Source: Tubulanus polymorphus (lineage: Eukaryota > Animalia > Nemertea). From it: a DNA stretch of 64,000 nucleotides. The position numbers and the translations under genes are program-made. Below the pieces are notes generated by a model that had not been told where the DNA came from, searched no databases, and saw only the letters and a list, made by a program, of their open reading frames with translations. The stretch lies in assembly GCF_964204645.1 (NCBI RefSeq), contig NC_134031.1:4774001-4838000 (forward strand), in the 5' to 3' direction. Of the stretch, positions 3,001 through 61,000 are shown piece after piece (position 1 is the stretch's first letter; every line of letters begins with the position of its first letter).

Positions 3001-6000
3001 TTATCTGGTCATAATTGCAGAAACTTCAGTTAGTCCTCGAAAATTTTCCAGTGATGATTTCAGAGTTTAACACGATTTGGTGTAGGCAATTACATCATCG
3101 GTTCATAGCATGACAGCACTCCCAGACTTCACAGACAAAATACAACACTATCAACAATCATAATTCACTCTCATCTAATTTTGAAAAAAAAACAAATCGC
3201 GCCATTTTTAAGATGAAATCTCTGAAGATCGAATGACCAAAGTGCATCAAGACTACACAGTGTCAAGGTAGGTTTAAGTGCGAAAAATATGACATCTTGG
3301 ATGAATAACTACATCTCCTCATTATAATCTTGTGTCGTCAACTATGGCGACCACGAACATACATACAAAAAATGCATTTGTTTTTGGGTCTCCTCTCTCT
3401 TCTCTATGACTGATTTTTCAGCAGGTTTTGCAAGTCCCCTCTCTCTTTGCATTGTTTTAGGTCCAGGATCGTTCATTGGCTGGTTTCAGCCCAAAAAAAA
3501 CTATCTAATCATAATCGCTGATATTTAAAGGTGACAGCCCTCCCCAAAAAACCACACTGCCAGTAATCCTGCTTCACACATTTGATGAAGCCTCGCGCCA
3601 TTTTAGTCGATGATATGTTATTGTATCCTTTAAAAATTTTGGAAAAAAAACTCGCGCCATTTTTGAAGATGAAATCACTAAATAATAACCATGCAAATTG
3701 TATCAAAACTACACACAGGGTCTTTCATAATTTTGAATTGAATTGTACATTAGGGTTCTATCGCCTTTGATTCGCAGATAAAAGACCACAGTGAAAGCAC
3801 CCATACTCGATACATTTGATAAAAACAATAGCCATTTTATTCAATGAAAATCTACACCATTTAATTTGACATAATCTGATGAATTACCGCAATACGTCGA
3901 CATGACACAGTACCGATAAAAGGTACTTTATAGGTTTTAGATGACAGCACTCCCAAATTGAATTTTCATAGAATGCAGACAACATCAGAGCTGTATAGGG
4001 AATCTAACCCCACAGCCTGAAACCTTCACGGCCGCCAACCCGACTGCTGGCTTCAAGCCCGACTGTATGACGCTGAACAGGAAATGTATCGGTCAGACAG
4101 GGTCAGTTGGTGGTTTCCTGGCCTTAGTTTGATGAATCTTGCCAGTGCGCTCCGCCGGTGCGAGCCAGATACTGGTCCAGGGTTCACACGGTTTTCATCG
4201 GTAGGTCTGGGGAGGGGGCCAGACAATCCAGCACGGGCCGCTGTCGGGAGGAGTCAGCTAAAGTTAGTGAAGGGCTGCAACATTTCTCAGAAAGTCATTA
4301 CATTTGGACCCTTTTTACTGTTTAATTTGACTTATTTGAAGCATTTGCACAGAAAATCAGTTTCGAAATCAAAATATTTACTTACGATGATACGCTTTGA
4401 AAAGTATCATTCGGGATATTTTTGAACACATAATCTCTGATTAATAAGCTACGTTATAGATTTTGGCAGACAACACTCAAACTTTACAGATAAATGTACA
4501 ACTCAATCGCGCCATTTTTAAGATGAAATGTCACAGTGCATCATGACTACAGAATAGTAAGGTAGGTTTAAGCGAAAAGATGAAATCTTAGATGAATGAC
4601 CACATGCCCCCGGTGTAATCTACTGTCCCCTATGGCGATCATCCATACAAAAATGGATTTGTTTTTTTTTTGGTCACCTCATCCTCTTTGACTGACTTTT
4701 CGGCAAGTTTTGCGTTGCAAGTCCCCTGGCCTATCTCTGCACTGCACTGTTTTCAGTCCAGTTCAGGTCAGTCTGTTTTCAGCCCAAGGATATTTATCTG
4801 GTCATAATTGCAGAAACTTCAGTTAGTCCTTGAAAATTTTCCAGTGGTGATTCCAGAGTTTAACACGATTTAGTGTAGGCAATTACATCATCGGTTCATA
4901 GCATGACAGCACTCCCAGACTTCACAGACAAAATACGACACTATCAGCAATCATAATTCACTCTCATCTAATTTTGAAAAAAAGCAAATCGCGCCATTTT
5001 TATGATGAAATCTCTGAAGATCGAATGACCAAAGTGCATCAAGACTACACAGTGTCAAGGTAGGTTTAAGTGCGAAAAATATGACATCTTGGATGAATAA
5101 CTACATCTCATTATAATCTAGTGTCGTCAACTATAGCTACCACGAACATACATACAAAAAATGCATTTGCTTTTGGGTCTCCTCTCTCTCTTCTCTATGA
5201 CTGATTTTTCAGCAGGTTTTGCAAGTCCAATCTCTCTTTGCATTGTTTTAGGTCCAGGATCGTTCATTCAGCCCAAAAAAAACTATCTAATCATAATCGC
5301 TGATATTTAAAGGTGACAGCCCTCCCCAAAAAACCACACTGCCAGTAATCCTGCTTCACACATTTGATGAAACCTCGCGCCATTTTAGTCGATGATATGT
5401 TATTGTATCCTTTAAAAATTTTAGAAAAAAAAACTCGCGCCATTTTTGAAGATGAAATCACTAAATAATAACCATGCAAATTGTATCAAAACTACACACA
5501 GCGTCTTACATAATTTTGAATTGAATTGTACATTAGGGTTCTGTTGCCTTTGATTCGCAGATAAAAGACAACAGTGAAAGTACCCATACTCGATACATTT
5601 GATAAAAACAATAGCCATTTTATTAATTGAAAATCTACACCATTTAATTAGACATAATCGTATGAATTACCGCAATACGTCGATATAACTACACAGTACC
5701 GATAAAAGGTACTTTATAGGTTTTAGATGACAGCACTCCCAAATTGAATTTTCATAGAATGCAGACAACATCAGAGCTGTATCGGGAATCTAACCCCACA
5801 GCCTGAAACCTTCACGGCCGCCAACCCGACTGCTGGCTTCAAGCCCGACTGTATGACGCTGAACAGGAAATGTATCGGTCAGACAGGGTCAGTTGGTGGT
5901 TTCCTGGCCTTAGTTTGATGAATCTTGCCAGTGCGCTCCGCCGGTGCGAGCCAGATACTGGTCCAGGGTTCACACGGTTTTCATCGGTAGGTCTGGGGAG

Positions 6001-9000
6001 GGGGCCAGACAATCCAGCACGGGCCGCTGTCGGGAGGAGTCAGCTAAAGTTAGTGAAGGGCTGCAACATTTCTCAGAAAGTCATTACATTTGGAACCTTT
6101 TTACTGTTTAATTTGACTTATTTGAAGCATTTGCACAGAAAATCAGTTTCGAAATCAAAATATTTACTTACGATGATACGCTTTGAAAAGTATCATTCGG
6201 GATATTTTTGAACACATAATCTCTGATTAATGAGCTACGTTATAGATTTTGGCAGACAACACTCAAACTTTACAGGTAAATGTACAACTCAATCGCGCCA
6301 TTTTTAAGATGAAATGTCACAATGCATCATTCTACAGAACAGTAAGGTAGGTTTAAGCGAAAAGATGAAATCTTAGACGAATGACCACATACCCCCGGTG
6401 TAATCTACTGTCACCTATGGCGATCATCCATACAAAAATGAATTTGTTTTTTTTTGGTCACCTCATCCTCTTTGACTGACTTTTTCGGCAAGTTTTGCGT
6501 TGCAAGTCCCCTGGCCTCTCTGCACTGTTTCAGTCCAGTTCAGGTCAGTCTCTTTTCAGCCCAAGGATATTTATCTGGTCATAATTGCAGAAACTTCAGT
6601 TAGTCCTCGAAAATTTTCCAGTGATGATTTCAGAGTTTAACACGATTTAGTGTAGGCAATTACATCATCGGTTCATAGCATGACAGCACTCCCAGACTTC
6701 ACAGACAAAATACAACACTATCAGCAATCATAATTCACTCTCATCTAATTTTGAAAAAAAACAAATCGCGCCATTTTTAAGATGAAATCTCTGAAGATCG
6801 AATGACCAAAGTGCATCAAGACTACACAGTGTCAAGGTAGGTTTAAGTGCGAAAAATATGACATCTAGGATGAATAACTACATCTCCTCATTATAATCTA
6901 GTGTCATCAACTATGGCGACCACGAACATACATACAAAAAATGCATTTGTTTTTGGGTCTCCTCTCTCTTCTCTATGACTGATTTTTCAGCAGGTTTTGC
7001 AAGTCCCCTCTCTCTTTGCATTGTTTTAGGTCCAGGATCGTTCATTGGCTGGTTTCAGCCCACGAATATCTATCCAATCATAATTGCTGATATTTTAAGG
7101 TGACAGCCCTCCCTTAAAAACCACACTACCAGTAATCCTGCTTCACACATTTGATGAAGCCTCGCGCCATTTTAGTCGATGATATGTTATTGTATCCTTT
7201 AAAAATTTTAGAAAAAAAAACTCGCGCCATTTTTGAAGATGAAGTCACTAAATAATAACCATGCAAATTGTATCAAAACTACACACAGCGTCTTACATAA
7301 TTTTGAATTGAATTGTACATTAGGGTTCTATCGCCTATGATTCGCAGATAAAAGACCACAGTAAAAGTACCCATACTCGATACATTTGATAAAAACAATA
7401 GCCATTTTATTAAATGAAAATCTACACCATTTAATTAGACATAATCTTATGAATTACCGCAATACGTCGACATAACTACACAGTACCGATAAAAGGTACT
7501 TTATAGGTTTTAGATGACAGCACTCCCAAATTGAATTTTCATAGAATGCAGACAACATCAGAGCTGTATCGGGAATCTAACCCCACAGCCTGAAACCTTC
7601 ACGGCCGCCAACCCGACTGCTGGCTTCAAGCCCGACTGTATGACGCTGAACAGGAAATGTATCGGTCAGACAGGGTCAGTTGGTGGTTTCCTGGCCTTAG
7701 TTTGATGAATCTTGCCAGTGCGCTCCGCCGGTGCGAGCCAGATACTGGTCCAGGGTTCACACGGTTTTCATCGGTAGGTCTGGGGAGGGGGCCAGACAAT
7801 CCAGCACGGGCCGCTGTCGGGAGGAGTCAGCTAAAGTTAGTGAAAGGCTGCAACATTTCTCAGAAAGTCATTACATTTGAACCCTTTTTACTGTTTAATT
7901 CGACTTATTTGAAGCATTTGCACAGAAAATCAGTTTCGAAATCAACATATTTACTTACGATGATACGCTTTGAAAAGTATCATTCGGGATATTTTTGAAC
8001 ACATAATCTCTGATTAATAAGCTACGTTATAGATTTTGGCAGACAACACTCAAACTTTACAGATAAATGTACAACTCAATCGCGCCATTTTTAAGATGAA
8101 ATGTCACAGTGCGACATGACTACAGAACAGTAAGGTAGGTTTAAGCGAAAAGATGAAATCTTAGATGAATGACCACATGCCCCCGGTGTAATCTACTGTC
8201 ACCAATGGCGATCATCCATACAAAAATGGATTTTTTTTTTTTTTTTGGTCACCTCATCCTCTTTGACTGACTTTTCGGCAAGTTTTGCGTTGCAAGTCCC
8301 CTGGCCTATCTCTGCACTGCACTGTTTTCAGTCCATTTCAGGTCAGTCTGTTTTCAGCCCAAGGATATTTATCTGGTCATAATTGCAGAAACTTCAGTTA
8401 GTCCTCGAAAATTTTCCAGTGATGATTCCAGAGTTTAACATGATTTGGTGTAGGCAATTACATCATCGGTTCATAGCATGACAGCACTCCCAGACTTCAC
8501 AGACAAAATACAACACTATCAACAATCATAATTCACTCTCATCTAATTTTGAAAAAAAAACAAATCGCGCCATTTTTAAGATGAAATCTCTGAAGATCGA
8601 ATGACCAAAGTGCATCAAGACTACACAGTGTCAAGGTAGGTTTAAGTGCGAAAAATATGACATCTTGGATGAATAACTACATCTCCTCATTATAATCTTG
8701 TGTCGTCAACTATGGCGACCACGAACATACATACAAAAAATGCATTTGTTTTTGGGTCTCCTCTCTCTCTTCTCTATGACTGATTTTTCAGCAGGTTTTG
8801 CAAGTCCCCTCTCTCTTTGCATTGTTTTAGGTCCAGGATCGTTCATTGGCTGGTTTCAGCCCAAAAAAAACTATCTAATCATAATCGCTGATATTTAAAG
8901 GTGACAGCCCTCCCCAAAAAACCACACTGCCAGTAATCCTGCTTCACACATTTGATGAAGCCTCGCGCCATTTTAGTCGATGATATGTTATTGTATCCTT

Positions 9001-11021: not shown

Positions 11022-12257
11022 TTAGTAAATGTTTACGAACAAGGCGAGCATCAATGCGCTGCAGAAAAAATCCGGGATCTTGAAAACCGTTGCTCCAGAC
11101 TCAACGAATTTGTACGCGGTACAGTTTCCTCGCATTTTCATGAAGTCTCGCGGTTTACGCCATATTTTACAGTCACAATCGTAGTCCATACCCAGTACTT
11201 TATTACCGCCGCATTTTTTCGAGGCGTACCGCAAAAACGGTATGACGAACGGCTGGAAAATGTGTTTATTAAACAACAAATCGTATCTCTCGAATTCGTC
11301 CGGGGTGTGGCACACCCCTCGTACTGTGAATGTTTCGTATTTCAGAAGGTCGTACAACTCGCAACCGCAATGTATCGGGTTGTCGTCCAGGTAAAGGGTC
11401 GAATGCTCAAATCGACAAGGGTCGGTGACGAAATTAACTGACGTTAGATTGTTCGAGCTCAGATCGACGAAGATCGGCAAAGATGCGTTGGCGAATGCGG
11501 CGTCGGAGATGGACGACATCCCGTTCGAGGAGAACCCGTAATGAGTGTGTTTGTTGTTCGGTAGACCGGCTAGCGAATCGTTGTCCAAATATAGAATCGA
11601 GTTGTAACTTAAATCAATCCAATCCAGACTTCGAAGCGGCGATAGCGATTCTCTGGGTACGTCCCTAAGCCTCGTTCCTTGCAAGCATATCGACGTGAGG
11701 CTATTTTCGAGACCGCGAAAAGATGCGGACGTGAGGGTTAACGGGTTAAAACTGATATCGAGCCGGTCGAGATTTCGTACGGACATGAAAGCTCCGTCTG
11801 GAATGTTGGTGATGAAATTCTGACGCAGGTCTAGTCTGGTCAAATTAGGCGTATGTTGAAAAACGACGGGGAATGCGTTCATACGACATTTCACCATACT
11901 GAGCTTTTGGAGTCCGTCGATTCCGGCAAAAGCTTCCGCGTCGATTCGCCGTATCGGATTGTTATCTAGATTGATTTCTTTGATACTCATTCCTTCGAAT
12001 GAGAATCTATCGATGGTTGTTATGTGATTGAAGTTCAATTCGAGACTCGTAACCGGCAACGAGAAATTACGATATTTGAGATTCGGAACGTGACTAAGAT
12101 TTCGATACCTACAGCTGACGATGCGCTCGACTTTGCGGTTAAGCATTTTCTGGGTAGTACAGTCGCAAGGTCGAACGTCTGTGCAACCAGCACTTATCAG
12201 AATCTGCATCGATAAAATGAGCAGTGAAAAGAACTCAAATGTTTTTGACGATGCCAT
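11022..12257 (-). CDS. Secreted, probably GPI-anchored leucine-rich-repeat protein (signal peptide, LRRNT, ~9 LRRs, LRRCT, hydrophobic C-terminal tail), 411 aa, single coding exon
   Basis: Hydrophobic N-terminus FFSLLILSMQILISAG. LRRNT-like C..PCDC...C. LxxLxLxxN repeats (LTRLDLRQNFI, LDRLDISFNPL, LDWIDLSYNSI). LRRCT-like NPIHCGC. C-terminal FFCSALMLALFVNIY with no cytoplasmic tail. A 5'UTR acceptor (TTTTTTCTTTCAG on -) sits at ~12322. Confidence 0.9.
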   Translation of the reverse strand: MASSKTFEFFSLLILSMQILISAGCTDVRPCDCTTQKMLNRKVERIVSCRYRNLSHVPNLKYRNFSLPVTSLELNFNHITTIDRFSFEGMSIKEINLDNNPIRRIDAEAFAGIDGLQKLSMVKCRMNAFPVVFQHTPNLTRLDLRQNFITNIPDGAFMSVRNLDRLDISFNPLTLTSASFRGLENSLTSICLQGTRLRDVPRESLSPLRSLDWIDLSYNSILYLDNDSLAGLPNNKHTHYGFSSNGMSSISDAAFANASLPIFVDLSSNNLTSVNFVTDPCRFEHSTLYLDDNPIHCGCELYDLLKYETFTVRGVCHTPDEFERYDLLFNKHIFQPFVIPFLRYASKKCGGNKVLGMDYDCDCKIWRKPRDFMKMRGNCTAYKFVESGATVFKIPDFFCSALMLALFVNIY

Positions 12258-18836: not shown

Positions 18837-19985
18837 TTACCTCTCGAAATCGTGTACCCTGGCAATAGCAAAATCTGGTGAACCCAAAATACACGTACCT
18901 GGGGTAAATCTAAGCACATGTTTGGTCATCGCGTCTACTGGTTTAGGTTCGGATATTGTGGCCCCGACTGTAGAAGTCAGCTCGTCCAAATGAGCCATTC
19001 TCGTTGACATGGTTGATACTGAGTCTTCTGCTGCCAGTATGTATTTCGCTTGCTCGGCGTACTTCATCAGCTTCTCTTTGTACGCTGTCAATGCATCCTG
19101 GTCGCCGTCAAGGTTTTCTGTGTGGTTCTTCTCGCGGTCGTCCAGCTCTAGCAGTAGTTTTCTCTCCTCTTCTTGAATGTCAGCTATTCGTCTGGCCGCG
19201 TGGGTGCGAATATCGTTTCTTAGCTTGTCGAATGTGTTGTTCACGGATCCCTGGTCGTTCGTTATGGCATCTAAAGTGTTGTCTATGTCGGTGATCTGGC
19301 ACTTGATTTCCGCGAGGAGTCTTTTCATTTTGTCTTGCTGTTTCGTTAACCCTTCTCCGACGTCGATGACTCGGTGGTTTTCGTGCTTCGTCATCGTACA
19401 AATTGTGCAGATGCCGACTTCGCAGATGTCGCAATAATATTTGATCATCTCGATCTGATCCGCGTGCTCTTTGCAGATGATTTTTGATTTATCGCGTTCA
19501 TTCAAGTTTACGATTTCGTGCTGCACGAAAAGTTTTACTTTGTCGTGAACGGCGAGACACGGGTTGCAGAAGTACTTATTGCAAATGTTACAGAAGACAT
19601 CGGCGGCGATCGTATGATCGGACAGTTTGCAAACCTGACACGCTTTGGTCCAGCCGTGGTCGGTGTCTAGTTCTTTCAAAATATCCGCGAATTTCGTGAC
19701 TTTGAAATCGTGTCGGAATCCGGTTATCCCCTTCGCTGGTACTTCGATCATCTCGCGACAAGTCGGACACGGTAGCTGACCGGCTATTGAAGTCGACTGC
19801 ATCTGGTAAACCTGCAAGTGCCTCGCCAGGCAATCTTCGCAAAACGTGTGCAAACATGGTAGCTGCCGAGGCCGAACGAACTGACCGTAACAGATCTGGC
19901 AACAGAGAACCTCCCTGGTGAAATCCTCCGGAAAACGGCATGTTTTGTTGCAGCAGTCCTCGACTTCCTTGCACATCGACGACAT
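18837..19985 (-). CDS. Tripartite-motif (RING, B-box 1, B-box 2, coiled-coil) E3 ligase-like protein
   Basis: RING CQIC...LPCLHTFCEDC...CPTCR. B-box 1 CQVC...FCNICNKYFCNPCLAVH...H. B-box 2 CKEH...YYCDICEVGICTICTMTKHENH, followed by a heptad-rich coiled coil. The ORF end overlaps a possible donor (AG|GTAACT at 18841/18840), so the true C-terminus may be spliced. Confidence 0.92.
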   Translation of the reverse strand: MSSMCKEVEDCCNKTCRFPEDFTREVLCCQICYGQFVRPRQLPCLHTFCEDCLARHLQVYQMQSTSIAGQLPCPTCREMIEVPAKGITGFRHDFKVTKFADILKELDTDHGWTKACQVCKLSDHTIAADVFCNICNKYFCNPCLAVHDKVKLFVQHEIVNLNERDKSKIICKEHADQIEMIKYYCDICEVGICTICTMTKHENHRVIDVGEGLTKQQDKMKRLLAEIKCQITDIDNTLDAITNDQGSVNNTFDKLRNDIRTHAARRIADIQEEERKLLLELDDREKNHTENLDGDQDALTAYKEKLMKYAEQAKYILAAEDSVSTMSTRMAHLDELTSTVGATISEPKPVDAMTKHVLRFTPGTCILGSPDFAIARVHDFER

Positions 19986-23540: not shown

Positions 23541-23969
23541 ATGGCATCGATGTTGTGTGCTAGAGTTATCTCGGCTGTCCGTCGCCCGCTCCTAGTGACG
23601 GCGGTACGTTGCGGCGGATCGGGCGGACCCGTCGTCGATCCGATGAAGGGCAAGGTCGTGTCCGATAACGTCACGATGCCTGACACGCTAGGACATTCGG
23701 TCGGCGCTGAGCGATACGAATTGCTCGCGAAACTCGCCGGAAACGAAGATCCATTCGAGATGAACGTCAAAATGCGCGGAGCCGGTTCGAAAGAAGAGCC
23801 GAATTTAGTGCCGTCCATTTACGAAAAGAGGCTGGTCGGCTGCATCTGTGAAGAGGACGCGACTTGCATCAACTGGATGCATCTATATAAAGGCGAACCG
23901 AAACGCTGCGAATGCGGACATTGGTTTCAATTATCCGAATTAAAATCAGTCGATTATACACAGCAATAA
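23541..23969 (+). CDS. COX5B: Cytochrome c oxidase subunit 5B, mitochondrial
   Basis: Arg-rich presequence, then HSVGAERYELLA...DPF, GSKEEPNLVPS...KRLVGCICEED and WMHL...GEPKRCECGHWFQL, which includes the zinc-binding cysteines. The CDS is uninterrupted; a 5'UTR intron (~23310-23532) ends in CTTTTTCAG. Confidence 0.97.
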   Translation: MASMLCARVISAVRRPLLVTAVRCGGSGGPVVDPMKGKVVSDNVTMPDTLGHSVGAERYELLAKLAGNEDPFEMNVKMRGAGSKEEPNLVPSIYEKRLVGCICEEDATCINWMHLYKGEPKRCECGHWFQLSELKSVDYTQQ

Positions 23970-26973: not shown

Positions 26974-30942
<3,969 letters not shown>

Positions 30943-31794: not shown

Positions 31795-34700
31795 ATGAAG
31801 TTTGCGGAACACTTGGGAGCCCATATAACGCCGGAATGGCGCAAACAGTACATCAACTACGAGGTAATTTCTGTTCGTTTCTCGCTTTTCATTTCGCCAA
31901 TTCTTTCAAAATCGTGCTAAGTATCGAAATGGAGCTACGCAATCCACGCGTTTTGTGTCTCCAAGGCTAGGCTTCTGCTCATAAGCGATCAGGAACCGTA
32001 AATTGACATTCGAACAAATCTTAACTCACCTCGCTCAGGTGATATGTAATAACCTGTCTCCGGTCCCGATCCCACCCGCTGTCACTGAATTTAATGAAGT
32101 TAGTGAAGAAAAAGGGTAGGGTTAGGCCCTAACAGAAATTCAAAAGGATATTGATTTGAGATCTTTCTTACCATCGAAGCGGTATCGATAGTCAGTCACT
32201 ACATATTCAGCGACACCTTATTTAAGGGCATGAATTTTTTATTGAACCTCCAAAATCTGCAAAACATTCATCAGTAATTATATGATGCATAGTACACGGA
32301 ATACTACATGGGAGTTCTATCAAATGATATTCAGTATATTACAAAATGATAAGTTCAGTGGTTGAAAGTCAAGAGAAAATACAAACAAATACATTTTTGT
32401 CGATCGCAATATTGACTTATTCAAGTACTGTCTGTATACTGGACGATCTAACAGGTAAACCCGAGATCTTATGGGTTACCCTTTCCTTTGTCTCCATATG
32501 GACAGCTAGATAATAATTCGTGTAGCCCTTTGTCTCTTTGGTGACCTCAGACAGTTGAAGAACTTCATGTTATAAAGTCTTTTTATCCTATTTTCGTGTT
32601 TCTTAACATTCGTTATCTAGGCATATCATTGATTCTATTACCCCAATATGCTAGCGGTCAAAATGTCACAGTAGGTCTAGTTGAAATGAATGGCATTGTG
32701 GATAAAGTCTTAACTTTATTTCTGTTATAGACTGGATTTCTACCTAATAAATAGGACAGATAAAAGACAAATTTGAAATGTTCCCATTCCTTGAATTAGA
32801 ATTATCCAAAGTCTTTCTTTTTCGCTTTCCTTTTCGCGATAAAACTTGATGTTTGATGTCTGTATGATGAGCTTTTGACGAGCTCAACTTGTCATGAAGT
32901 ATTGTATAGCCCTCACGATAGGTAAAACACAATATCCGTGTTGACGCGATGAGGAGAGAATCCCACAATGATAATAAAAAGTCCGAAAATGAAACTTCGA
33001 GATAGTAGTTTATTCAACGTTTCGACTATATCCTAATAGTCATCTTCAGGAATAATGAGATACTACAGAAATTATGAGATATATATACAATCCAGGGACA
33101 AAGAGACTAATTCAAGTAATCAGAGATGATACAAACTAAAGGAAAATTAACGTAGAAACAGTTACACGCTAAAATAGATTAAAGGGAAGCAAACTAAGGG
33201 GTGATTATAAACAACAATAGTGAGTATAAATATAAATGAAACTTAAAGTCAGTAGTAAAAAGAAAGACAAACTAAGGGGCACTAAATTAAAACAAAGGTG
33301 AATACAAGTTAAGTCAGAGACGAAATTGATGAGAGAACAAATTACAAATAATCAAAGGGGAATATATATCTCATAATTTCTGTAGTATCTCATTATTCCT
33401 GAAGATGACTATTAGGATATAGTCGAAACGTTGAATAAACTACTATCTCGAAGTTTCATTTTCGGACTTTTTATTATCATTGTGGGATTCTCTCCTCATT
33501 GTATAGCCCTATTCATCGAACATCGTTTATGGCTCATGTACCAGAAAACTCAGTTTTGATTTTTGTTTTTGGTTGGAATTTAGAAATAATATTTCGAGCC
33601 ATTTTTATCGAGAAAAAATCATGATGAATAAGACCCAATCAAAAATAAATGGTTTTGTTTAATTTAAATTGAAATTTTTGACCTGGGGACACCGCAATGC
33701 AACCATTCTATCAGAGAAAGAGTTTTAAATGCCTGACCCATGAGCTGTTGTAGGCCCTGAGACACGTTCTCATGTCTTTTATAGAAAATGAAAGAAATGC
33801 TGTACAAAGCACAAGAGGAACAGCCATCGCCGGAAGGTATCTTGAACAAATGTCTCAAGCCGCTGACTTCATATTGAATTTACAGAATGATAAATGATTA
33901 AATATTTAACATTGTTTGTACCCGTTGTCGGTCAATGGTGTTTTCTCATCATTTCAGAATCACATCCCAGCGCGATCGAACGTTATCTAGTTCGATTTCA
34001 TGACTATTTCCTTCACTTTTGTCAAAAAGAACTGGCAAAGATAAATACGTTCTTCTCAGGTAAATGATTGACAGATCATTAAAACACTTCTGATGATATA
34101 GTCAAATTTGAGAGGGTTTTTTGAAGATTCACAATACCCATTATCCGAAATTATGGAAAATATTAATCTGAATTCTTGTTTAGATGTATAGATACATGTA
34201 GGCCTATGTTCGTCAATTGTTTAAAATCAATTTCTCATTGTTTTCTCAGAAAAACTCGCCGAAGCGATTCGAAAATATTCGACGCTGAAAGCCGAATTGA
34301 TGTTACACCAAGAAGCGCAGAAACGCAATAAACAACATCACCACGGCAACAAGAACAAACAGGATCCGTCGTCACAGTTGCGGCACCGCAGCAGCGTGTT
34401 CGCGGTGCTCGAAGAAAAAGAGCAAGTCGTTCAAACTCGTAAAATGCACGATTTGAAATTGGCGTTCAGCGAGTTTTATCTCAGTTTGATCTTATTGCAA
34501 AATTACCAAACTCTCAATTTCACCGGCTTTCGAAAGATTCTCAAAAAACATGACAAGGTAATAATGGTATAAGTCTATGTACAGAGTCCCCAAAACTCAG
34601 TGATTTCTTAAAAACTCCTTTTAAACAGGAATTGCTTTTAAAAGTGCTTGAAACTCCTTTGTTTTGAACAAAATGCCCTCTCAATTTCTGAGAAATGGGC

Positions 34701-37700
34701 AATTAGAAATGTTTGTAGTTGTACAGTGAACTATGCCTTAATCGATACAGTTGGGACCAAGTTTTGTTTTTACCCTATCAAGTGGTTACCGAAATAGAAA
34801 CTGAGTGGTGAAAAGTTAGTGTAAAGGATGAACATTTGCTTACTTAATGGTTTACCGAGTTAAACAGTACTGATTTAGGAGGAGTCTACAGTAATTGGGA
34901 TATGAAAGTGATGTAGACGCTTCCTTGAAATTTTCTCCATCAGAACACCTTGAGAACTCATTGTATCTAGGAATGACTGATCTGTAGGGACAGTGCACAA
35001 TTCCTCTTTGAGTTTTACGTAATGCGCAGAATATGCGGAGGATTTTTTATATTCGCTTTATTACAGCTGTACGTTACTGATCTTGGTTCGCAGTGGAGAA
35101 TGGAACACGTGGAACCAGCACCATTCTACACCAGTAAAGACGTTGATCAACTCATATCCAAAGTTGAGGTTCGTGTCAATTTCTTTGTGGATTATTTGAG
35201 TTGCCCTAAATACATAATTTGTAGTGGCTGAAACATGGATGAGTCGTCCATAATCGAATCAGTTTATAAGTTGGAAGATTTTATGATTTTTGCTTAGGGA
35301 TTTGAATAGATACTAGCCATCCAATGTTTAAATGCTCTTTAGGCCTTAAAATACCCTTTTTCGTGTAAAAAGACCGTCAACTTTACGCTTGAGGTATAAG
35401 TGATATTCTGACTATTTAATAGTTTTTATTCCGAGCTAAGACAAATAATCCAGTCTGATTTGATAAGTTGGAAGGATTTTATGAGCTGTGTTACTTTGTA
35501 AAGGGGATTTCAATGAACCACCCTATCTTGAAAACTATTTCAAATTTTTTCATGGGGAATAAGCGGTATTCCGATTGTTTGTTTTAATTAAAAGAGCAAT
35601 TATCCAGTCTTTGACGAATATGTGGTAATCGCGTGCATTCTTTACTGCAAATATAAAACATCAGACGCTTCCTCCGTCTATCTTCAGGCTTTGTTTACGA
35701 ATGAATTGGAGGGAGGAAATCGTCAGAAAGCGATGAAAAGATTGCGCGTACCGCCGCTTACCGAACAGGTACGTAAACTACTAAATTTTTATCATCGACA
35801 CTGCCCTCTGGTGGTTCGTATATAAGACTGACCTTGAAAAAAGTTTGTTATCTTGAAAAAACTGATACAATTTGAAAAAAAAGTATTGTTCTGAATCGTG
35901 ATATGCACATGACTGATTTATGATTATGTACTTAAAGAAAGACTACTTTTGAATTAACAATTTATGGAGTGATTTTTCTGATAACGTATTCTTTTCTTAT
36001 CTCAATCAAACGCTCTAATAAATGGCATTACTTGATAAACGTGAACGGTGATATTGAATTTTTTTACGCTGCGATGATTACGGTGAAAAAGTTAAAAGCT
36101 TCGCCATTGAAACGTTGTAAGAATGTGGAAATGCTTTCAAAAAGCTCGGAAATCAATAATGGTTTTAGATTATAATGGTGTGCAGCCATGGGTTTTAGTT
36201 TGAATATGAAAATTATGTAACTGCGTTTGAGCAAATCCGCAGAGCTTTAACAATGTCCACCACAAGGCCACTAGTCTACACTGCAATGTATTACCGTACG
36301 TACTGACATTTTCAGTGCACTACTTGACAGACTGACTTGTTTATCCAGAAAACATTTGAATCGCTACATTAAGGATGAAATATACATCAAAAGGACTAGA
36401 TTTAAAGGAGTTTGTTTAAAAGAGAATATATACCCTGGATGCACCGACAATGAGCAGTTTGTTATAGGTCATGTTTAGTATTACACACATGTATCTGTGT
36501 AACCACACTGCTGTAGCAATGCTTGATGCGTTAATGGGATTTCGATTGTTACTCGAATTTGGGAATGCCGCGATTTAAGAATGTAATGCAGAAGGAATGG
36601 GAGAATAGAAATGGGACTTCTCATTCGCTAATATCTCTTATCAGTTATCAATAAGGACATTGCGACATAAATAATGTGACCGTTCTGTCAGTCGATCACT
36701 TATAAAGAAAGTGTGTTATGAATCTCTGGTTCAAAGTTCGCTTCAGCTTATCTGTGTATTGATAATGTAGTAACCGGGCGAGCTGGACTGGTAAAATTGA
36801 AGTGTTCTTTATACCAGTAGTGATATTATTATATTCGGGCCGTGTATCGACTTTTTCGGATTTCGACTTCTGCGTTCGCTAACGCATACATGGCAATTCG
36901 TTCTATTCTACGTATGATATTTTCGCTGGTAAAAACCGCTCGTCGTCCGCGCGAGAACAACCCACGATGAATAATCGACCGCCGTGTTTCACGATCCAAA
37001 CGCCGGTTCGAGACGATGAGGAAGGAGAATCGTCGCAACAGCTGCCGTTTATTCCGAGGCCGCGGCGTACGACTTTAGCCGCCGAGCTGATCGAGAACTT
37101 CACGTCGCCGTTCGGTTCGCCGGCGCCGGTCTGGTTGACGATGTCGGACAGTTTCGCCGACAACGAGGACAGCGAATCGGACGATCTCAGCGACCGCATC
37201 GGCGCGATCGGATTTACACACGACAGCGGCAACGAGTCGGAGACGTCGCAACAGGAACGGTCATCGAGCGATACGCCGATCAGCGACGACGACGACGAGA
37301 ACTCGCCGTTAGTCGGGTCGTATTACGAGAAAAACACGGTTCGTTTCGAACCGTATATCAGTCGTTATGTGCTCGCCCATGAAAAACCGGTGGAAGTAAG
37401 TGCATTTCATCACGAGCGGAGAGAGAAATGGGAAATACAGCTGAAAAACGGTTACGAGCTAAACAAATTAAGGCAAACCGAAACTAGGGGGTATTATCGA
37501 AATAATTAGTGTAGTAATTACATCTAAGTAATTGTGTGGGATTCTCTATAAAGCTATCGTCACAACGCGGACATCAATGGTTTCAATGGTTACACGTACT
37601 CGGTGTTACTGCAGTAGGCAGTTCAGTAGGTTACAGCACCATTAACTAATCATTTTCATCTACTAATTTCCCCTATGCGACAATCGCAACTCTTCATAGT

Positions 37701-40700
37701 GGATGTAGCTCGATATTTTTCTGTTCATAGAAGTAGGTCATTTGACACCAAACAATGAAGATTTTTTCAGTATAGCCACATGTTTTAGATCTTGTTATCA
37801 AAAAGGAATTATGATCCATCCCAAAAGGGGTGGATCCAGAATTTTCAAAGGGGGATGCTCAGCTGGTCATCCCAAAAGAAAGTTTTGAAACATCAGTCTT
37901 ACCGGTAATTCTCATGCATTCTGCGCATTTCACTCAAAAACTGTGAATAGATAGTGCATTTTCCAAAGAGGGATGTGCTGTAGCACCTCAAGCACCCCGG
38001 CTGGATTCGCGCCTGATGAAAGGTGTAAAAAATATCTTTCCCCTATTTTCAGCCCTCTCCCTGATGATGAAGTATTTTACAATTTAATCTTGGTTCCTAG
38101 GCTCTTAAAAGATTTCTATGCTTTTCTTTGCAGTTAATGAATTTTGTTTTTGTGTATGGAAAAAGATAATTTGAAAACCCTGACTCCATCGAAATGTTGT
38201 GTTAGAAAAAGATCAATAACCTTATTAACATTTCTTTCTCTACCCTCACAGCAAAATCCATGGACTACGTTTCGAGTGGGCTTTTATATTGGTGTCTTTG
38301 TTGTACTTATTTCTATATTATGTATATCTGGTAAGTAGATATTCTAGTTGCAAATTTAGTCCCGATTTTCAGTATTTGTTACTTTTTTTATAACAACAAA
38401 TACTGATTTGTTTGATGCGTACAGAAATATGAAAGATAATTCTGAGGGTCTTACTGTTGATTACTGATTTGAACAATTGAACAATTTCTTTCATATTTCA
38501 ATGAACTTTTACTGAAAAATTCTTACTGATGGCACTTTTCAGAGGTTGGCTGCCAATGGCAGCCCTAGAATATCATTGTAGCCTATTTCCTAATTAAGAA
38601 AACCAGTTAAAAATATACAAAGCACACATTAGCTTCAACTTCGATAGACCTTTTATTTCATCATTGCGAAAAAATGATCAGAATATTGATGAATTATTTT
38701 TCAGCTCCATTATTGAAGATCGATGTCCCGTGGGTTCCAGCGTTGATCATGTACCGCGGTACGTTTCTAATCGTATTTTTCTTGGCACTGATCAGCGGAA
38801 ATACGTACGGCTGGAGAACATCGGGTGTCAACCACGTTCTGATATTCGAAATCGATCCTAGGAATCATTTGTCGCATCAGGAACTGTTAGAGGTACGGGA
38901 AATTTCATCATATACGCAGTCGTGCTGAATGAAGGCATTTTAAATACGTTTTATGAATCCATGATTTAGTAATTTAAGAAACCACTTAATTTTGAATGCA
39001 AACTTTCTACAGGGTGTCTCAGAAAATGTGATACACCTACTTCAGCTTGTAATAAAGTTCGCCAATCTTAAGAGAATCAATTAAAGCTCAGTCATGCATG
39101 AAGGAGTTGTTACCCTAATTACGCGGCATGGAGATCCTTAGCAAGATTTTAAGAGATCCTCCTGATTTAAGATATCCTACTGATTATCTGGAATACGAAC
39201 AAAAGAAGGTTTCATTAAATCACATTTTCTGAAACACCCTGTAGTGAGAGTGATTTATTCAACTACAATGTACCACTAATAGAGTGGATGCTACACTGGT
39301 TAGCATCCAAAATGTTGTGTTTTTTCAAGAAGAATGTTTCAGCTGTGATTATTATCTAATTTCAGATGGCAGGATTTTTCGGTGTGATATGGGGATTGAG
39401 TGTTATCGGTTATTTGTTTAGCAGTCTGATTCATATTCCAGTATTCGCGAATCCGCTTGCCTTGGTCGCTTTTTATGTGATTTACCTGCTGAATCCGATT
39501 AAAATTCTACATTATAAAGCACGTTTCTGGTTGCTCAGGGTACTCGTAAGTATCAACAATGGCGTGGTCACCCTTTCAGTTCTGACTCATTAATACCCTT
39601 AAGTACTGTACATAATTTGAAAATTTCGCTATATTGCGTCTACACTGCAGTGCGGTGTATCATTAGTTACTTATATTTCATAATGTTCGATAAGGTGCTG
39701 CCATCTTTCAAAAGAGATATAAACTAATTACATCAATACACTATGATGCGGTGTACTGCAAAGTCTATCACTGGTTTGTACACCGCGGTGCGGTGTAGCA
39801 ATGTAGCGACCTGAATAACAAAAGGACTCTGATTGATGTATGCATGTGTATGTATTTTTTTTCTTTTGTAGTTTCGAATCTTTACCGCTCCTTTCCATTA
39901 TGTGAGCTTTCCCGATTTCTGGCTGGCTGATCAGTTGAACAGTTTGGCCGTCATCATGCAGGATTTCGAGTTTTTCATCTGTTACTATGCATTTGAAGTT
40001 GACTGGCTAGGTGCTGATCGTAAGTACTTCTGAAACGAATACGCACAAGATAGTTAGTAGTCTAGTATCTAGCCGTCATTCCCAAACAACCATTGAAGGG
40101 GAACCCACATACATCGTCTGGTATTCACACTAGATAAGGAGCTGCAACCTCCAAGAAATTAATGGGTTTAGACTGATGCTAGGACCAGTTTAAGAATTGA
40201 GCTTGAAAACACTTGAAGTACTATAACATAACTAACATAAACGAGTTAGACATTAAGTTTCCCAATTTGGCCCTGGTAACTAAACCTTATAATGTCTACG
40301 CTATTTCTTTTAATCTAGGTCCTGAAGTGTGCAATAAGGTTACTTATGGAATCCGCCCTCTTGTTGCGCTGCTTCCCGCTTGGTTTCGGTTTGCTCAATG
40401 TCTACGACGTTATCGTGATACGAAACAAGCGTTTCCACATTTAGTCAACGCCGGCAAATATTCGACTACATTCTTTGTTGTGGTGTTTTCATCCTTAAAC
40501 AAGTATTATATCGGTAAGTATGAAGATCTCTTTTGTAGACGGCGATCCAGATAAGACCGGGCTTAATTCTAATTCCGCAAAACAGGTTTAGTCTTATACT
40601 ATTGATTACGAAAATCAATAGTATAAGACTAAACCTGTTTTGCGGAATTAGAATTAAAGACACACTCTCAGAGATGAGCATAGCTAAACTTCATTTCATC

Positions 40701-43700
40701 CTATTATCTCCATCCTCCACCAGCTGGGATCCGAAACTGATGGCGTTGCTAGACTCACCCCCGGCACAAAACCCTGCCACACTAGTCCTTACAGCAAATC
40801 TCCACATATATCTGCACAACCAGTCTAGTGTGGCAGAGTTTCGTACTGTGGCGAGTCTTGATGCCATCAGGTTCAAATCTCTGGGGGAGGATGATTATCT
40901 CAGAATTTAGAAAGGTCTTGAATTATCACCATAAGCATTTGAGTTAATGGAATGATAATGAAATGAACAACAAGCGAATTTCAAAATACTACTAGATCAT
41001 TTAGAAGTATAGAAAGTTGACGCGAAAGAGTCAAATTGTAGAAAAAAATTGTAAATCATAACTTCTTCTAGATCATCACGGAGACCATTGGAAACAGATC
41101 AATGCATTCTTCTATTTGTGGATCGCTTCGTGCATCGTTAGTTCCTGTTACACGTACACGTGGGATATAAAAATGGATTGGGGATTGTTCGATAAAAACG
41201 CCGGTGAAAATCGCTTTCTACGCGAGGAAATCGTCTACGCGTATAAGGTATGAACATGAGGAAGAAAACCTTACATAACTGATGAAATCACTGATTACTA
41301 ATTACCTACTGATTTGCTGTTGCCGATGGGTTTATTGTTCATCAATCGAATAATTTGGAATCTCTGATAAACTTTTCTGGATATTTTCTAGATAATTGAT
41401 ATGATCCAGTTACCTTACATGATTGATCGTATATACCGTATATATCTTATTGTCTATAGCTATTGGTCTTATTGTCTAAGTCTAGTTTTCAGGTCTGTGT
41501 ATTGATGAAGCTTCCAATCCCCCAATGAATTTATATATCGAGATGTTTCTCTCTGTTTTCCAGGGTTATTATTATTTCGGAATTATTGAAGATTTTATAC
41601 TGAGATTTGCGTGGAGTATTACGGTATCTGTTGGTGAAGGTGGTCTCATACACGGTGAAATACTCAAAACGGTTCTAGCTGTGTTTGAAGTCGTCAGGTT
41701 AGAACAACACCGTAATTACAATAGATAGTTTTAAATGCATCCTCGCTTGCCAGGGTTTGATTGACTCCCGCCGAAGCTCATACGAACAAAAACCATGACC
41801 CGATTCATTCTTCTATTACACCGCTCAAGATTTCTTGGGTGGACAGGTTGCTGCTCAGCGGCCACCAGTCCATATATCTAGCCAATCAGATGTGTTGTTT
41901 TGATAGAGCAAATCTGCTGGTGATAACAATGCATCTGACTTCATACATGGACTGGTGGCCACTGAGCAGTAAGCTGTCCGCCCAAGAAATCTTGGGTGGT
42001 GTAATAGACCAACGAAGGGTCTGCGGCTAGGGTTTGTTTTGGCTTAGGTGGGAGGCAATCAAACCCCCCTGTTTTGAATGCTAAGATACCACGATATTAT
42101 CAGTAGTTCTCATTGATTTTACAGACGTTTTATCTGGAACTTTTTCCGATTAGAGAATGAACATTTGAACAACTGCGGTCAGTTCCGCGCCGTACGGGAT
42201 ATATCTATAACACCGATACACGCGAATGATCAGGCATTACTGGAGAATATGATGGACAACGACGACGGCGTACAAAACCGAATGAAACATAAAAAGAAGA
42301 AAACTAGGTACTTATTAGATTTTATTCGCTAATCAAAGGCAATACTAGACAATTATAGACAAAATCACGAGCCGTAAATTCATCCTTAATTCACCCACTC
42401 GCATCCAAACAACCTTGAAAATTGATTTTGTATTCAGGGCGCAGTTAACAGATTTACGCAAGTTAATTAAAGGAGAATTGATTTTCAGGCAAAGATCACG
42501 GACGTACAAACCAGTTGAAGTCGAGCCGCATAGGTGGCCCTCTAACAGGTTGGATTGTCATTAGAATGTCTGATATAACTTTCACTTCCGTCTGCATGAT
42601 CCTCGATGTCCCTATCTCTGAACTTCAGGGTTACATCTGATTTCACATTTCTTTTCATCAAGTTTCTTCCAAATCTTCTCTTTACCTGGACTACAGCTAT
42701 ACATTTCGAGAATGCTTTTCATCACGTTCATGGGTTGTGGTAGTTGTGAGCTGTTGGTGCAATGATCACTACAAATGTTTGGCTGAAATAAAATGATACC
42801 TTGTTTCTCCAAATCGGCCAGGTCATTTTGTTAACTGCGATAGAATTTGTAATTAGTGCATTTCTATTACTGCTAGGTCTGTTATGGTTAGCTAGATCAT
42901 GATCTTAAAAAATATGTACAGGGTCGACAGGCAGTTGGCCGTGTCGACTTTTAAGCTCTGCAGTAATGCGAAGCAAGGTATCAATTATTATAGCCTTATA
43001 CATACTGCTTATTTTCGCTAATATTGAATTCAGATTCAGATTTGTTACGGGTTTTATTAGATGCTGGTGTGCTGAAAGTGGAAATAACATATTGTAATCG
43101 TATTTTAATCATTTGTAGAAATAGGAAATGATGTGTAAGTTACAGCGATGTTGAAATGAGTGCGTTTAAACAATGGTGCAGGAATGATTCCACATGAATT
43201 TCACTAACGTTTTGTTTTTGTTTCTGTGACCTAAAACAACACTATCAGTTTTAAAACAACAATAGATATGTAATATGTTTAGTTGATATATTGTTGTAAC
43301 TGGTGACTGGTTTGTATTTCTCTATATATAGACTCGCTAAAGTTCAGGAGTTACGCAGAGTGTATGGTAAAATCGGAGGGTAAGTTTCACTTACGTCGTG
43401 AAGCATATTCATTGATTGCTTGATAATTGTTCATCGTGTCATCGGTTTGATTATCCCTTCCAATGATAACTGTGAATTCTTCCCACGTACACATATCGCT
43501 CTATATATTTCAACGCGTTGCAAAAATCGAGCATAGCCGATGCAGATAAGGCCATCTTTAGTTACTGTTTTCTTCACTTGTCTACACACTGGGTATGGGT
43601 CCATATTATCGAATATTGAGCATATCTGACTCAGATAAGGCCATCTCCTTTCATAGCTTTCAGAAGAATTAAAAACCACTGTTGATACTCACAGCATTAG

Positions 43701-51910: not shown

Positions 51911-51982
51911 TCCTCGGTAGTATAGTGGTGAGTATCCGCGCCTGTCACGTGCGAGACCCGGGTTCGATTCCCGGCCGGGGAG
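51911..51982 (+). tRNA. tRNA-Asp (anticodon GTC)
   Basis: TCCTCGGTAGTATAGTGGTGAGTATCCGCGCCTGTCACGTGCGAGACCCGGGTTCGATTCCCGGCCGGGGAG forms an intact cloverleaf with A and B boxes. A T-run terminator starts at 51987. Confidence 0.97.
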
Positions 51983-58065: not shown

Positions 58066-61000
58066 CTTACGTAAATAGAGTGCGGATTGGATTTCTTCAA
58101 GTCATGTTTAAAGCACATTTTAAAGCATATAATAGCGTATTGTTTACGTTTCGATGTTAATGGCTCGTCCGCCGTCTGCACATATAGAAAACCTGTCACC
58201 TAAAATTAGATCGAAATAACTCGACTCCCAGAAGTCACACGTAATTAGATTATCGACGAAAATTAAATTTCCGCTTATTCGAGGTGAGTAGAGACATGTT
58301 GTTCGTTCGGAATATTTCATACGAACGGTTCACGTCGAGTAGCGTTCAGACGCTTTACTCGTATTCGGAATAAGTTTCAGTTTATCTGCGTATTCTGACG
58401 GCTGCCGGCGCGGCGGTTGTGGAAACGATAACTCCTCGTCTGTATTCCCCGTGAAATTTATCGCTGATAACGCGTAAAATGCCATCGGCGTCGAATAAAA
58501 GGCCGGCAAATAATTCATTCACTTAATTTCCAGTTCTGGCAACTTATATAATTTTCAGCTTTCTTAATGAAGCCTCTTAATATCTGTTTTCGATTGTTAA
58601 ATGGGTTTATAAACTTTTTGTAAAAGTTTGTCTGCATAGATATATACCATGTACATCATATATCTATGTGGAAAAGCTCCTGAAGTACCTATCAAATATT
58701 AATTAGATGTTTGATGTTATATACTTGAATCATCTTCAGGTATACGCCATACGGTATTTGTATCTGTATTGCAGGGCTACCAACCTCTGAAAAGTGTAAA
58801 AAAGTGTACTTTTTTCAGTCACATTACTTCATTGAAATACGAAAGAACATGTTCAATTATTCAGTAATCAACAGTAAGACCCTCGGTAACATCTTTCATA
58901 TCTATTTATGCATCAAAAAAACCAAATCAGTATTTCTCATGATTGAATAGTTACAAAAACTGAAAATCAGAGATTGCGGCCACCTTTTCAGAGAATACGA
59001 ATCAAAAAGACTTTCTTTCTAAATTTCCATTGCAGTCGCACGCGACGAGACCCAGCACAAGACCCAGCGGGGACAAATATACAAACATATGATTTTCCAG
59101 TCAACGGATTACGAGATTATTTGCAAATTACAGGTTTAAATGGTAGACGGATTATCAATTAATCCCCTGCAAGTTGTCGGCCATAGAAAGCGAACTGCCG
59201 TTCTAATGGAATAATAAGCCATAATCACACGGGAGAACTGATTAATTATTTCCATTCTCGCAGCGTGTTTTCCCTTGAATAGCGGACGCACTCCGCGAGT
59301 GACCGCAGTACCTACCACACCCTGATTTAATTAAAGACCACTGAAACCTCGCCGGACCACTCGCCGTTTCATTCACAGCGCGGTCACTGCAGAGGTAGTT
59401 ACCAGTTTTTTCAAAACGCGATATCGGTTAAACGAAGGGACCGAAATCTAATTAGCGAATAAAACCCCGCCGAACGAAGCCCCATTAACCCTCGGCTCAC
59501 ATTTGGGAGCGACGAGGATACGAAATAATTTCGGGCGGCATTCGAGGCCTGAACGTCGAACCAAACCGAAGCCCTCGGAAACTTCGAAAATGCCTTTTCT
59601 ACCGATGAGACCGCGACAAGTGAATTCTATAACGGAACGATTGGCCAGTACGCCTACAGTGGCTAGCGTCGCCGCCCGGCACGACTTCGACGCGCAAAGC
59701 TGTCATATTCAGTTTTTGAAGCTACGCGACGGTCGAGTTCAACCGTTCAAAAACCAACTGCGAAATCCGACCGTTCAGTTCGTGTTCGCGCGAACGAAAT
59801 CAGCTCAATCGGCGCGCGGCGGCAGCATGGATACTACGCAGGCAGAAAACAGCGCGAAATCATCGACGGAAAGCTGGACGCCGGGACTCGCGCGGTATTA
59901 TCTCGGCTATCAAGCGGTCAACTCGGACGAACTGCGGTCGATCGTCGAGCGTTTAACGAAGCCGACCCTGGCAAGTCGCGGCGGTATCGACCTGCGCGAT
60001 AAACGTTACGAATACATTCCGAAACTGCGTCTGAAAACGTTGCCCGTCATCGATGGATTAGAATCGCGGTATCGCGGCGACCGAGCGCCCGCGACGCCGG
60101 AAGCGCTGGACGAGATCGTCAGACGTCTGACGCGACCGACGGCGGCGACGACCGCGCGCGATCGGTCCACGCCGAACCCAAACGATAAACCGACGAAACG
60201 CGTCATCTGATCGGATCGGACGCGACACACGAGACCGCAATGAATAGTAATCACGAAAATACGACTTTTCTCGCGGCGGAATTTCTCTGATTAATATTCA
60301 TCGAGATTTCGTCGCAGCGTTCGAATTTGAATTCGTTTGAATTTCAAATATATCGAAGTTGACGCAGCCGTCGTCAATATTGAGTTGATAAACAGCGACG
60401 AACACTCGATGGATGTGATCTGAGTAGGCGGAGGATTTCATCATCGCTCGCTCGACTTTGTGAACACTCGGACATAAATATCAATTTTTATTCTCGCGCG
60501 TAATCAATTCATATATTGCGCCGCAGTAAATCGATCTCAAGTCAATTTCATCCAGAAACAGCAGACGCCTCGTTAAAAAGATAAGTAAACCGCGTCGACT
60601 GACGACCGACCGGGTGCGAATAATGAATAAATGCAAAGTTTGGGAAGAGAAAAAAGCAAGACGGAACATGTCGGGTAAATACACGAGTGTCGCAGATGTC
60701 ATCAGCGAATTTATGTAAATCGGAATTTTTCCCCTTTCGACGAGGCACAGACTTTTCGACTGTCCTACGAACAAAACATCTACGACGAATCATTGACACT
60801 CGTCGTCAAAGGTTAATACCATAATCGTTATTAAACTGTTATTAAGTATTTATATTTCAACCGAAGTATGTTTATTCTGACGAAAAAAGTTGTGATTATA
60901 AGTAGATTTATGCATATAAATATGTCATATAAACCGTACACAATAACGGTATTTAGAGTCGTTAATGGTTATTCATTGAACGGGAATAAAGATCCGACCA

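Follow-up and report, generated by a model that had tools for sequence, protein, structure and literature searches.

A spliced alternative first exon in intron 6 of Tubulanus polymorphus XPR1 that probably encodes an isoform lacking SPX

XPR1 (SLC53A1) belongs to the XPR1, PHO1 and SYG1 family, in which the SPX domain is the inositol pyrophosphate (PP-InsP) sensor and the membrane part carries the phosphate pathway. Removal of SPX has been studied with engineered proteins. Human XPR1 lacking residues 1–225 was described as "completely non-functional", in a report that also called earlier accounts of whether SPX is essential conflicting (PMC11926068). In S. pombe, loss of SPX raises transport, which is the opposite of the result for HsXPR1 (PMC13083964), and Xenopus constructs without SPX gave background efflux, one of them down-regulating Slc34-mediated uptake (PMC11033234). 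EXS-only proteins also occur naturally: ERD1 of fungi and plants exports inorganic phosphate (Pi) at the cis-Golgi (PMC13521290, PMC5714488, PMC10231389), and the control of ERD1 in the absence of SPX figures among the questions still open (PMC13521290). The human XPR1 isoforms used experimentally comprise 696 amino acids (NM_004736) and 631 amino acids (the "short" form, NM_001135669); that source describes no alternative first exon or loss of SPX (bioRxiv 10.1101/2020.10.16.339374). Here we describe an alternative first exon in the XPR1 gene of the nemertean Tubulanus polymorphus, located in a 64,000-nucleotide (nt) stretch of contig NC_134031.1 (positions 4,774,001 to 4,838,000, forward strand; hereafter the window).

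The exon lies at 36846..37395 and is joined in RNA to exon 7 of XPR1 at 38252, so that the transcript bypasses the exons that encode SPX. The transcript is real, appears to derive from an alternative promoter and is probably coding. A full-text literature search turned up no natural form of XPR1 without SPX, a result that is limited to the literature searched and is not proof of absence.

An alternative first exon spliced in frame to XPR1 exon 7

The first-pass annotation of the window drew attention to a 143-codon open reading frame (ORF; 36967–37395) in intron 6 of XPR1, preceded by an in-frame TAA at 36880, ending at the donor GAA/GTAAGT and matched by a phase-0 exon at 38252. Each of these features was read directly from the sequence, and the placement in intron 6 agrees with the coding exons mapped by RNA joints and reading frames. 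All coordinates are those of the window, and all XPR1 features are on its forward strand. The frame from the ATG at 36967 is open for 429 nt up to the donor (37395/37396), which it reaches in phase 0; exon 7, which follows the acceptor ...ccctcacag and begins at 38252, takes up the frame in phase 0, and this frame stays open through the exons further downstream.

A junction from 37395 to 38252 had been named beforehand as the test of this arrangement. The material consisted of four sequencing runs from one study and one older run under the same species label, and contigs of runs X2 to X5 were placed on window positions 34200–40100. X2 contigs skip introns at GT..AG boundaries, whereas X3 and X4 contigs cross the same boundaries unspliced (for example 37242–37485 and 38463–38969); X2 is therefore RNA, and X3 and X4 are DNA. 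X2 contigs reveal neither the strand nor the true 5′ end and are not a reliable guide to abundance, and the depths given below are k-mer depths, to be read with that caveat. Run X5 (2015, presumed RNA) had no contig on 34200–40100, and no informative differences between samples were present within the compared stretch.

The junction was present in X2. Record 4 (580 nt, depth 39.3, 0 mismatches) runs from 36846 to 37395 and then continues for 30 nt into exon 7; the joint 37395 to 38252 removes an 856-nt intron (37396..38251, GTAAGT...CAG) at GT..AG with zero positional ambiguity. The canonical SPX form was assembled from the same run as record 1 (837 nt, depth 40.3), with joints 34555 to 35065, 35166 to 35686 and 35764(+4) to 38252, and this contig passes directly from exon 6 to exon 7. 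Both 5′ contigs end 30–33 nt inside exon 7, and record 6 (depth 178) begins at exon 7 and continues through the joints 38329 to 38704, 38890 to 39364 and 39545 to 39872. With two contigs ending k−1 letters into exon 7 and a shared contig starting exactly at 38252, the assembly graph forks as it should if two alternative 5′ parts use one acceptor. The two 5′ ends are mutually exclusive.

We considered whether the junction might be an assembly artefact, a chimeric contig, contaminating DNA or a sequence from another organism. Caution is called for because it was seen in a single contig with a 30-nt side, and joints at a likeness below 95 and joints with short sides deserve such caution in general. 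However, the contig matches 580 nt of single-copy sequence with 0 mismatches, it breaks exactly at GT..AG with zero ambiguity, and it uses the same acceptor as the canonical junction. The 30 nt are the k−1 overlap expected at a graph fork, and the joint was not present in DNA runs X3 and X4, which come from the same sample. An artefactual origin is thus extremely unlikely.

The annotation had also argued that the ORF lies in a first exon, and the RNA agrees. Nothing upstream of 36846, neither joined nor loose letters, is attached to the contig, although contigs cannot define the transcription start site. The in-frame TAA (36880..36882) lies within the transcribed exon, and between it and the ATG there is one AG only (36954–36955), which is out of phase and lacks a pyrimidine tract; AG is absent at 36844–36845 and at 36874–36875. 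A cassette exon was rejected because the frame is stopped upstream, no acceptor is usable and the contig starts without an upstream joint. A TATA-like element (TTTATAC, 36808–36814) lies 32–38 nt 5′ of the contig start, a weak hint read from the letters only. The exon together with 876 nt upstream is single-copy in the genome, so the exon is not a repeat, and a search of the same genome for paralogues or a repeat origin of the exon returned none.

The position of the swap was as proposed. Coding exons 1–6 (31795..35768) encode the SPX domain and linker, and the alternative transcript skips all six. Exon 7 (38252–38330) is shared, both X2 5′ contigs enter it, and it is the first exon of the membrane core, containing the start of transmembrane helix 1 (TM1). 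It aligns to human XPR1 residues ~229–250, just ahead of TM1, and the whole SPX-coding part is therefore replaced in the alternative form.

Further X2 RNA was found on either side of the exon. Low-depth RNA extends across 35973–36780, with contigs at 36085–36471 (depth 10.5) and 36534–36780 (depth 7.7) in single-copy intron sequence; no such X2 RNA was present in the canonical introns at 35185–35578 and 35776–35972. The RNA at 35973–36780 could reflect transcription that starts further upstream or runs divergently. In the downstream intron, a contig at 37449–37903 (depth 16.5) may represent partial intron retention or unspliced transcripts with a longer frame: if unspliced, the frame from 36967 reaches a stop at 37507–37509, which gives 180 amino acids, 37 codons beyond the donor. 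The end of this contig at 37903 was considered as a splice site and rejected, as it falls inside a dispersed repeat of ~100 nt (~37826–37930) with at least 9 other genome copies at 73–85% identity on several contigs.

The open 37 codons and the downstream RNA (37449–37903, depth ~16) are what might be expected if the locus were mainly an independent nested gene with an unspliced 180-amino-acid product (36967–37509), of which a side fraction splices to exon 7. Against this, the contig that leaves the exon takes the spliced path, and the first 53 nt of the intron past the donor (37396–37448) have no X2 depth. The canonical AATAAA was not seen in the intron, and the 180-amino-acid product, like the 143-residue peptide, matched no family. 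We regard a nested gene as very unlikely.

Coding character and predicted properties of the N terminus

The exon comprises a 5′ untranslated region of 121 nt (36846–36966) and the 143 codons (36967–37395). The exon block has a GC content of 0.57 and a CpG observed/expected ratio of ~2, compared with 0.38 and 1.1 for the whole window, and CpG is not depleted. The stop-to-stop frame is 208 codons long, a length attained by 3/2000 dinucleotide shuffles of the block. GC content by codon position was 0.55, 0.45 and 0.71 (GC3 > GC1 > GC2). Codon usage was scored as log-odds with a table built from other coding sequence in the window, 1353 codons in all, set against intron trinucleotides; frame 0 reached 0.74 bits per codon compared with 0.21–0.51 in the five other frames, and 0/1000 shuffles attained 0.74. 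The ORF thus has coding-like statistics.

An upstream open reading frame (uORF) of 26 codons in another frame (36890..36970) precedes the main start. Just two AUGs, at 36890 and 36914, precede the main one in the contig, and both belong to this uORF (ORF 36842..36970), and its TGA overlaps the main ATG (ATGA, 36967–36970). Position −3 is T at the uORF AUG and A at the main AUG. As it holds every upstream AUG in the contig, the uORF may control translation of the SPX-less isoform.

No relatives of the 143-residue peptide were detected. Pfam returned 0 families at E values up to 10, a word-index protein search gave 26 candidates of which none scored, and an exhaustive phmmer search of 1.84 billion representative proteins gave 0 matches. 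In the ESM Atlas the best score was 0.87, which is under the useful level. The peptide, which the first-pass annotation had described as rich in Asp, Glu and Ser, is acidic and rich in Ser and Pro: the isoelectric point is 4.2 and the net charge is −18, with 29 Asp and Glu, 29 Ser and Thr, and 13 Pro residues. A single-sequence AlphaFold2 model had a mean predicted local distance difference test (pLDDT) score of 48.4 and one helix of 7 residues, consistent with predicted disorder. The maximum 19-residue hydropathy is 0.5; accordingly, no signal peptide or membrane segment is predicted. An acidic, disordered tail without a transmembrane segment would leave the N terminus in the cytosol, as SPX is. 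S/T-x-x-D/E sites number 8 compared with a shuffle mean of 5.8, a difference that is not significant.

The proposal that the peptide carries an acidic dileucine sorting signal was not supported. The strict motif [DE]xxxL[LI] has 0 matches in the 143 residues, and the sole candidate, ENSPLV, ends in LV. It is the one relaxed match, and at least one such match occurred in 16% ([DE]xxxL[LIV]) to 24% ([DERQ]xxxL[LVI]) of 5000 peptide shuffles. The tyrosines that the annotation had pointed to do not help: 0/4 form a YxxPhi motif. Both kinds of sorting signal were rejected, as at chance level or absent.

With moderate confidence, we favor a genuine alternative-promoter mRNA that encodes an XPR1 of ~570 amino acids without SPX. 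An internal promoter in intron 6 would start transcription at or just upstream of 36846, producing a first exon with a 121-nt leader and overlapping uORF followed by 143 codons, which would be spliced in phase 0 from 37395 to 38252 and so leave out the six exons that encode SPX. Ribosomes would reach the main frame by leaky scanning through the uORF or by reinitiating downstream of it. The predicted product of ~570 amino acids would retain all ten helices of the membrane core as well as EXS and the C-terminal tail, and would exchange the PP-InsP-sensing SPX domain for a cytosolic, strongly acidic, serine-rich and intrinsically disordered tail. Such a protein would presumably not be gated by PP-InsP through SPX. 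We read it as a subunit that would work independently of SPX, by itself or dimerized with full-length XPR1, and whose channel activity would be altered, probably being lower or under different control; the acidic tail would be a platform for phosphorylation or interaction rather than a proven sorting signal. The expectation of low or differently controlled activity and of possible action in dimers comes from analogy with the human SPX deletion; from the S. pombe result and the ERD1 precedent, an active SPX-independent channel is also possible. The published deletions nevertheless caution against taking it for granted that the isoform is an active exporter.

Several observations weigh against this reading. 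The junction comes from a single contig of a single RNA run on one sample; its exon 7 side is the 30 nt of the expected k−1 overlap, and continuity into the rest of XPR1 is deduced from the graph fork. No homologue of the 143 residues was found, and the exon may be young or non-functional. The RNA at 35973–36780 and 37449–37903 may mean that the start site is dispersed and that some transcripts are unspliced. A uORF precedes the main AUG, and human XPR1 without SPX is inactive (PMC11926068).

The transcript, although real, might instead be a by-product of a cryptic or evolutionarily young intronic promoter. Its ORF would then yield no functional product, and the RNA would amount to noise, a decay target or nothing more than a regulator of XPR1 transcription. 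An orphan among 1.84 billion proteins, in Pfam and in the Atlas, the peptide is disordered and of low complexity, and stops are scarce in GC-rich sequence, the reverse strand itself being open for 139 codons; the uORF, the diffuse low-level RNA around the exon and the inactivity of the human deletion (PMC11926068) point the same way. Such a by-product does not account so readily for codon usage in frame 0 above that of the five other frames, at a level that no shuffle attains, or for GC3 > GC1 > GC2. That the ORF ends at a consensus GTAAGT donor and meets exon 7 exactly in phase 0 would be an added coincidence for noise to explain, and the contig has a depth like that of the canonical 5′ contig (39.3 and 40.3, as k-mer depths that are not a reliable measure of abundance). 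We consider a by-product a real possibility, albeit an unlikely one.

The XPR1 gene and its neighborhood

The assembly comprises 268 Mb in 77 contigs, and a profile search placed every genome-wide match to EXS (PF03124) within one XPR1 gene. There were six exon-by-exon matches (window 38743–41698), covering model positions 2–316 of 330. A match to the SPX profile (PF03105) lies in the same gene at 34318–34563 and is part of the canonical transcript only. With both PF03124 and PF03105 present, the gene is an SLC53A1-type SPX-EXS XPR1. As one EXS-bearing locus was detected, the genome appears to have no separate ERD1-like gene. The SPX model also gave four weak matches elsewhere in the genome (C1, C2 and C3), inside long open frames; these may be low-complexity matches.

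XPR1 starts in coding exon 1 (31795–31863, from sequence and frame), followed by exons 2 (~33782–33836) and 3 (~33957–34059), both placed by reading frames. RNA joints and frame define exon 4 (34250–34557), which contains the SPX match, exon 5 (35067–35168) and exon 6 (35688–35768). Downstream of exon 7, exons 8 (38705–38892) and 9 (39366–39545) are placed by RNA joints and PF03124 matches, and the acceptor of exon 10 (39872–~40028) by the RNA joint 39545 to 39872. Further exons at ~40319–40513, 41098–~41250, 41564–~41690 and ~42125–42335 encode the transmembrane core, EXS and the C-terminal tail, with a stop near 42333; boundaries past 40100 were set by reading the sequence, with frames open in the carried frame. 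Within the XPR1 introns, k-mer depths of hundreds to thousands in X2–X4 at 34594–35184, 38337–38533 and 39519–39912, with many joints and loose ends, indicate high-copy repeats.

Upstream of XPR1 are three intronless ORFs that are GC- and CpG-rich like the alternative exon: a COX5B-like protein of 142 amino acids (23541–23969, forward strand), a RING/B-box TRIM-like protein of 382 amino acids (18837–19985, reverse strand) and a leucine-rich-repeat protein of 411 amino acids (11022–12257, reverse strand). Exons of a solute carrier resembling triose-phosphate/nucleotide-sugar transporters lie at 28060–30942 on the reverse strand, and the start of this gene is ~850 nt from the XPR1 ATG exon, forming a head-to-head pair. 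A tRNA gene (51911–51982, forward strand) was the sole Rfam match at the gathering threshold in the window, and a ~1.8-kb tandem array at 411–7998 had no Rfam match. Another GC- and CpG-rich ORF, of 235 codons and rich in Arg, Pro and Thr, is located at 59503–60210 on the forward strand.

Comparison with known SPX-less transporters

Domain swapping by alternative promoters is itself known, and this locus would be an instance of it in a familiar transporter. If XPR1 is naturally expressed without SPX, it would mean that evolution uses the truncation. Two isoforms of one gene compared in one cell type would separate the contributions of SPX to gating, dimer behavior and localization. If the exon is species-specific and untranslated, it would illustrate no more than a young promoter within an intron.

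The closest relative of the predicted isoform is full-length XPR1 itself, with which it would share the gene, the membrane core, EXS and the C-terminal tail. It differs in lacking SPX, the PP-InsP receptor that gates the channel, and in carrying instead a 143-residue acidic and disordered tail with no detectable relatives. The human 696- and 631-amino-acid isoforms are likewise alternative products of one XPR1 gene; the 631-amino-acid form is missing an internal segment and keeps SPX.

The engineered SPX deletions (human Δ1–225, Xenopus and S. pombe) have a near-identical cut point, at human residues ~225–229 when compared with the exon boundary here. They are laboratory constructs with conflicting outcomes, whereas the truncation at this locus is natural, arises through an alternative promoter and is accompanied by a new N-terminal tail.

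The likeness to ERD1-type proteins is that of an EXS protein without SPX, and the alternative exon has neither SPX nor any other Pfam match. The isoform could in principle fill an ERD1-like role, because the genome shows no second EXS locus. Taken further, one EXS gene with two promoters would supply both a PP-InsP-gated plasma-membrane exporter and an SPX-less, PP-InsP-independent channel for an internal compartment, either an ERD1-like Golgi or a storage organelle, with the acidic phospho-tail controlling trafficking or gating; we regard this fuller scheme, which the annotation had outlined in part, as quite unlikely. ERD1-type proteins are encoded by separate genes, and their regulation is described as involving neither SPX nor the C-terminal plug. 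The membrane part described here is XPR1's own and does not come from a separate ERD1-orthologous gene, and the predicted isoform would be an XPR1 product that keeps the XPR1 C-terminal exons.

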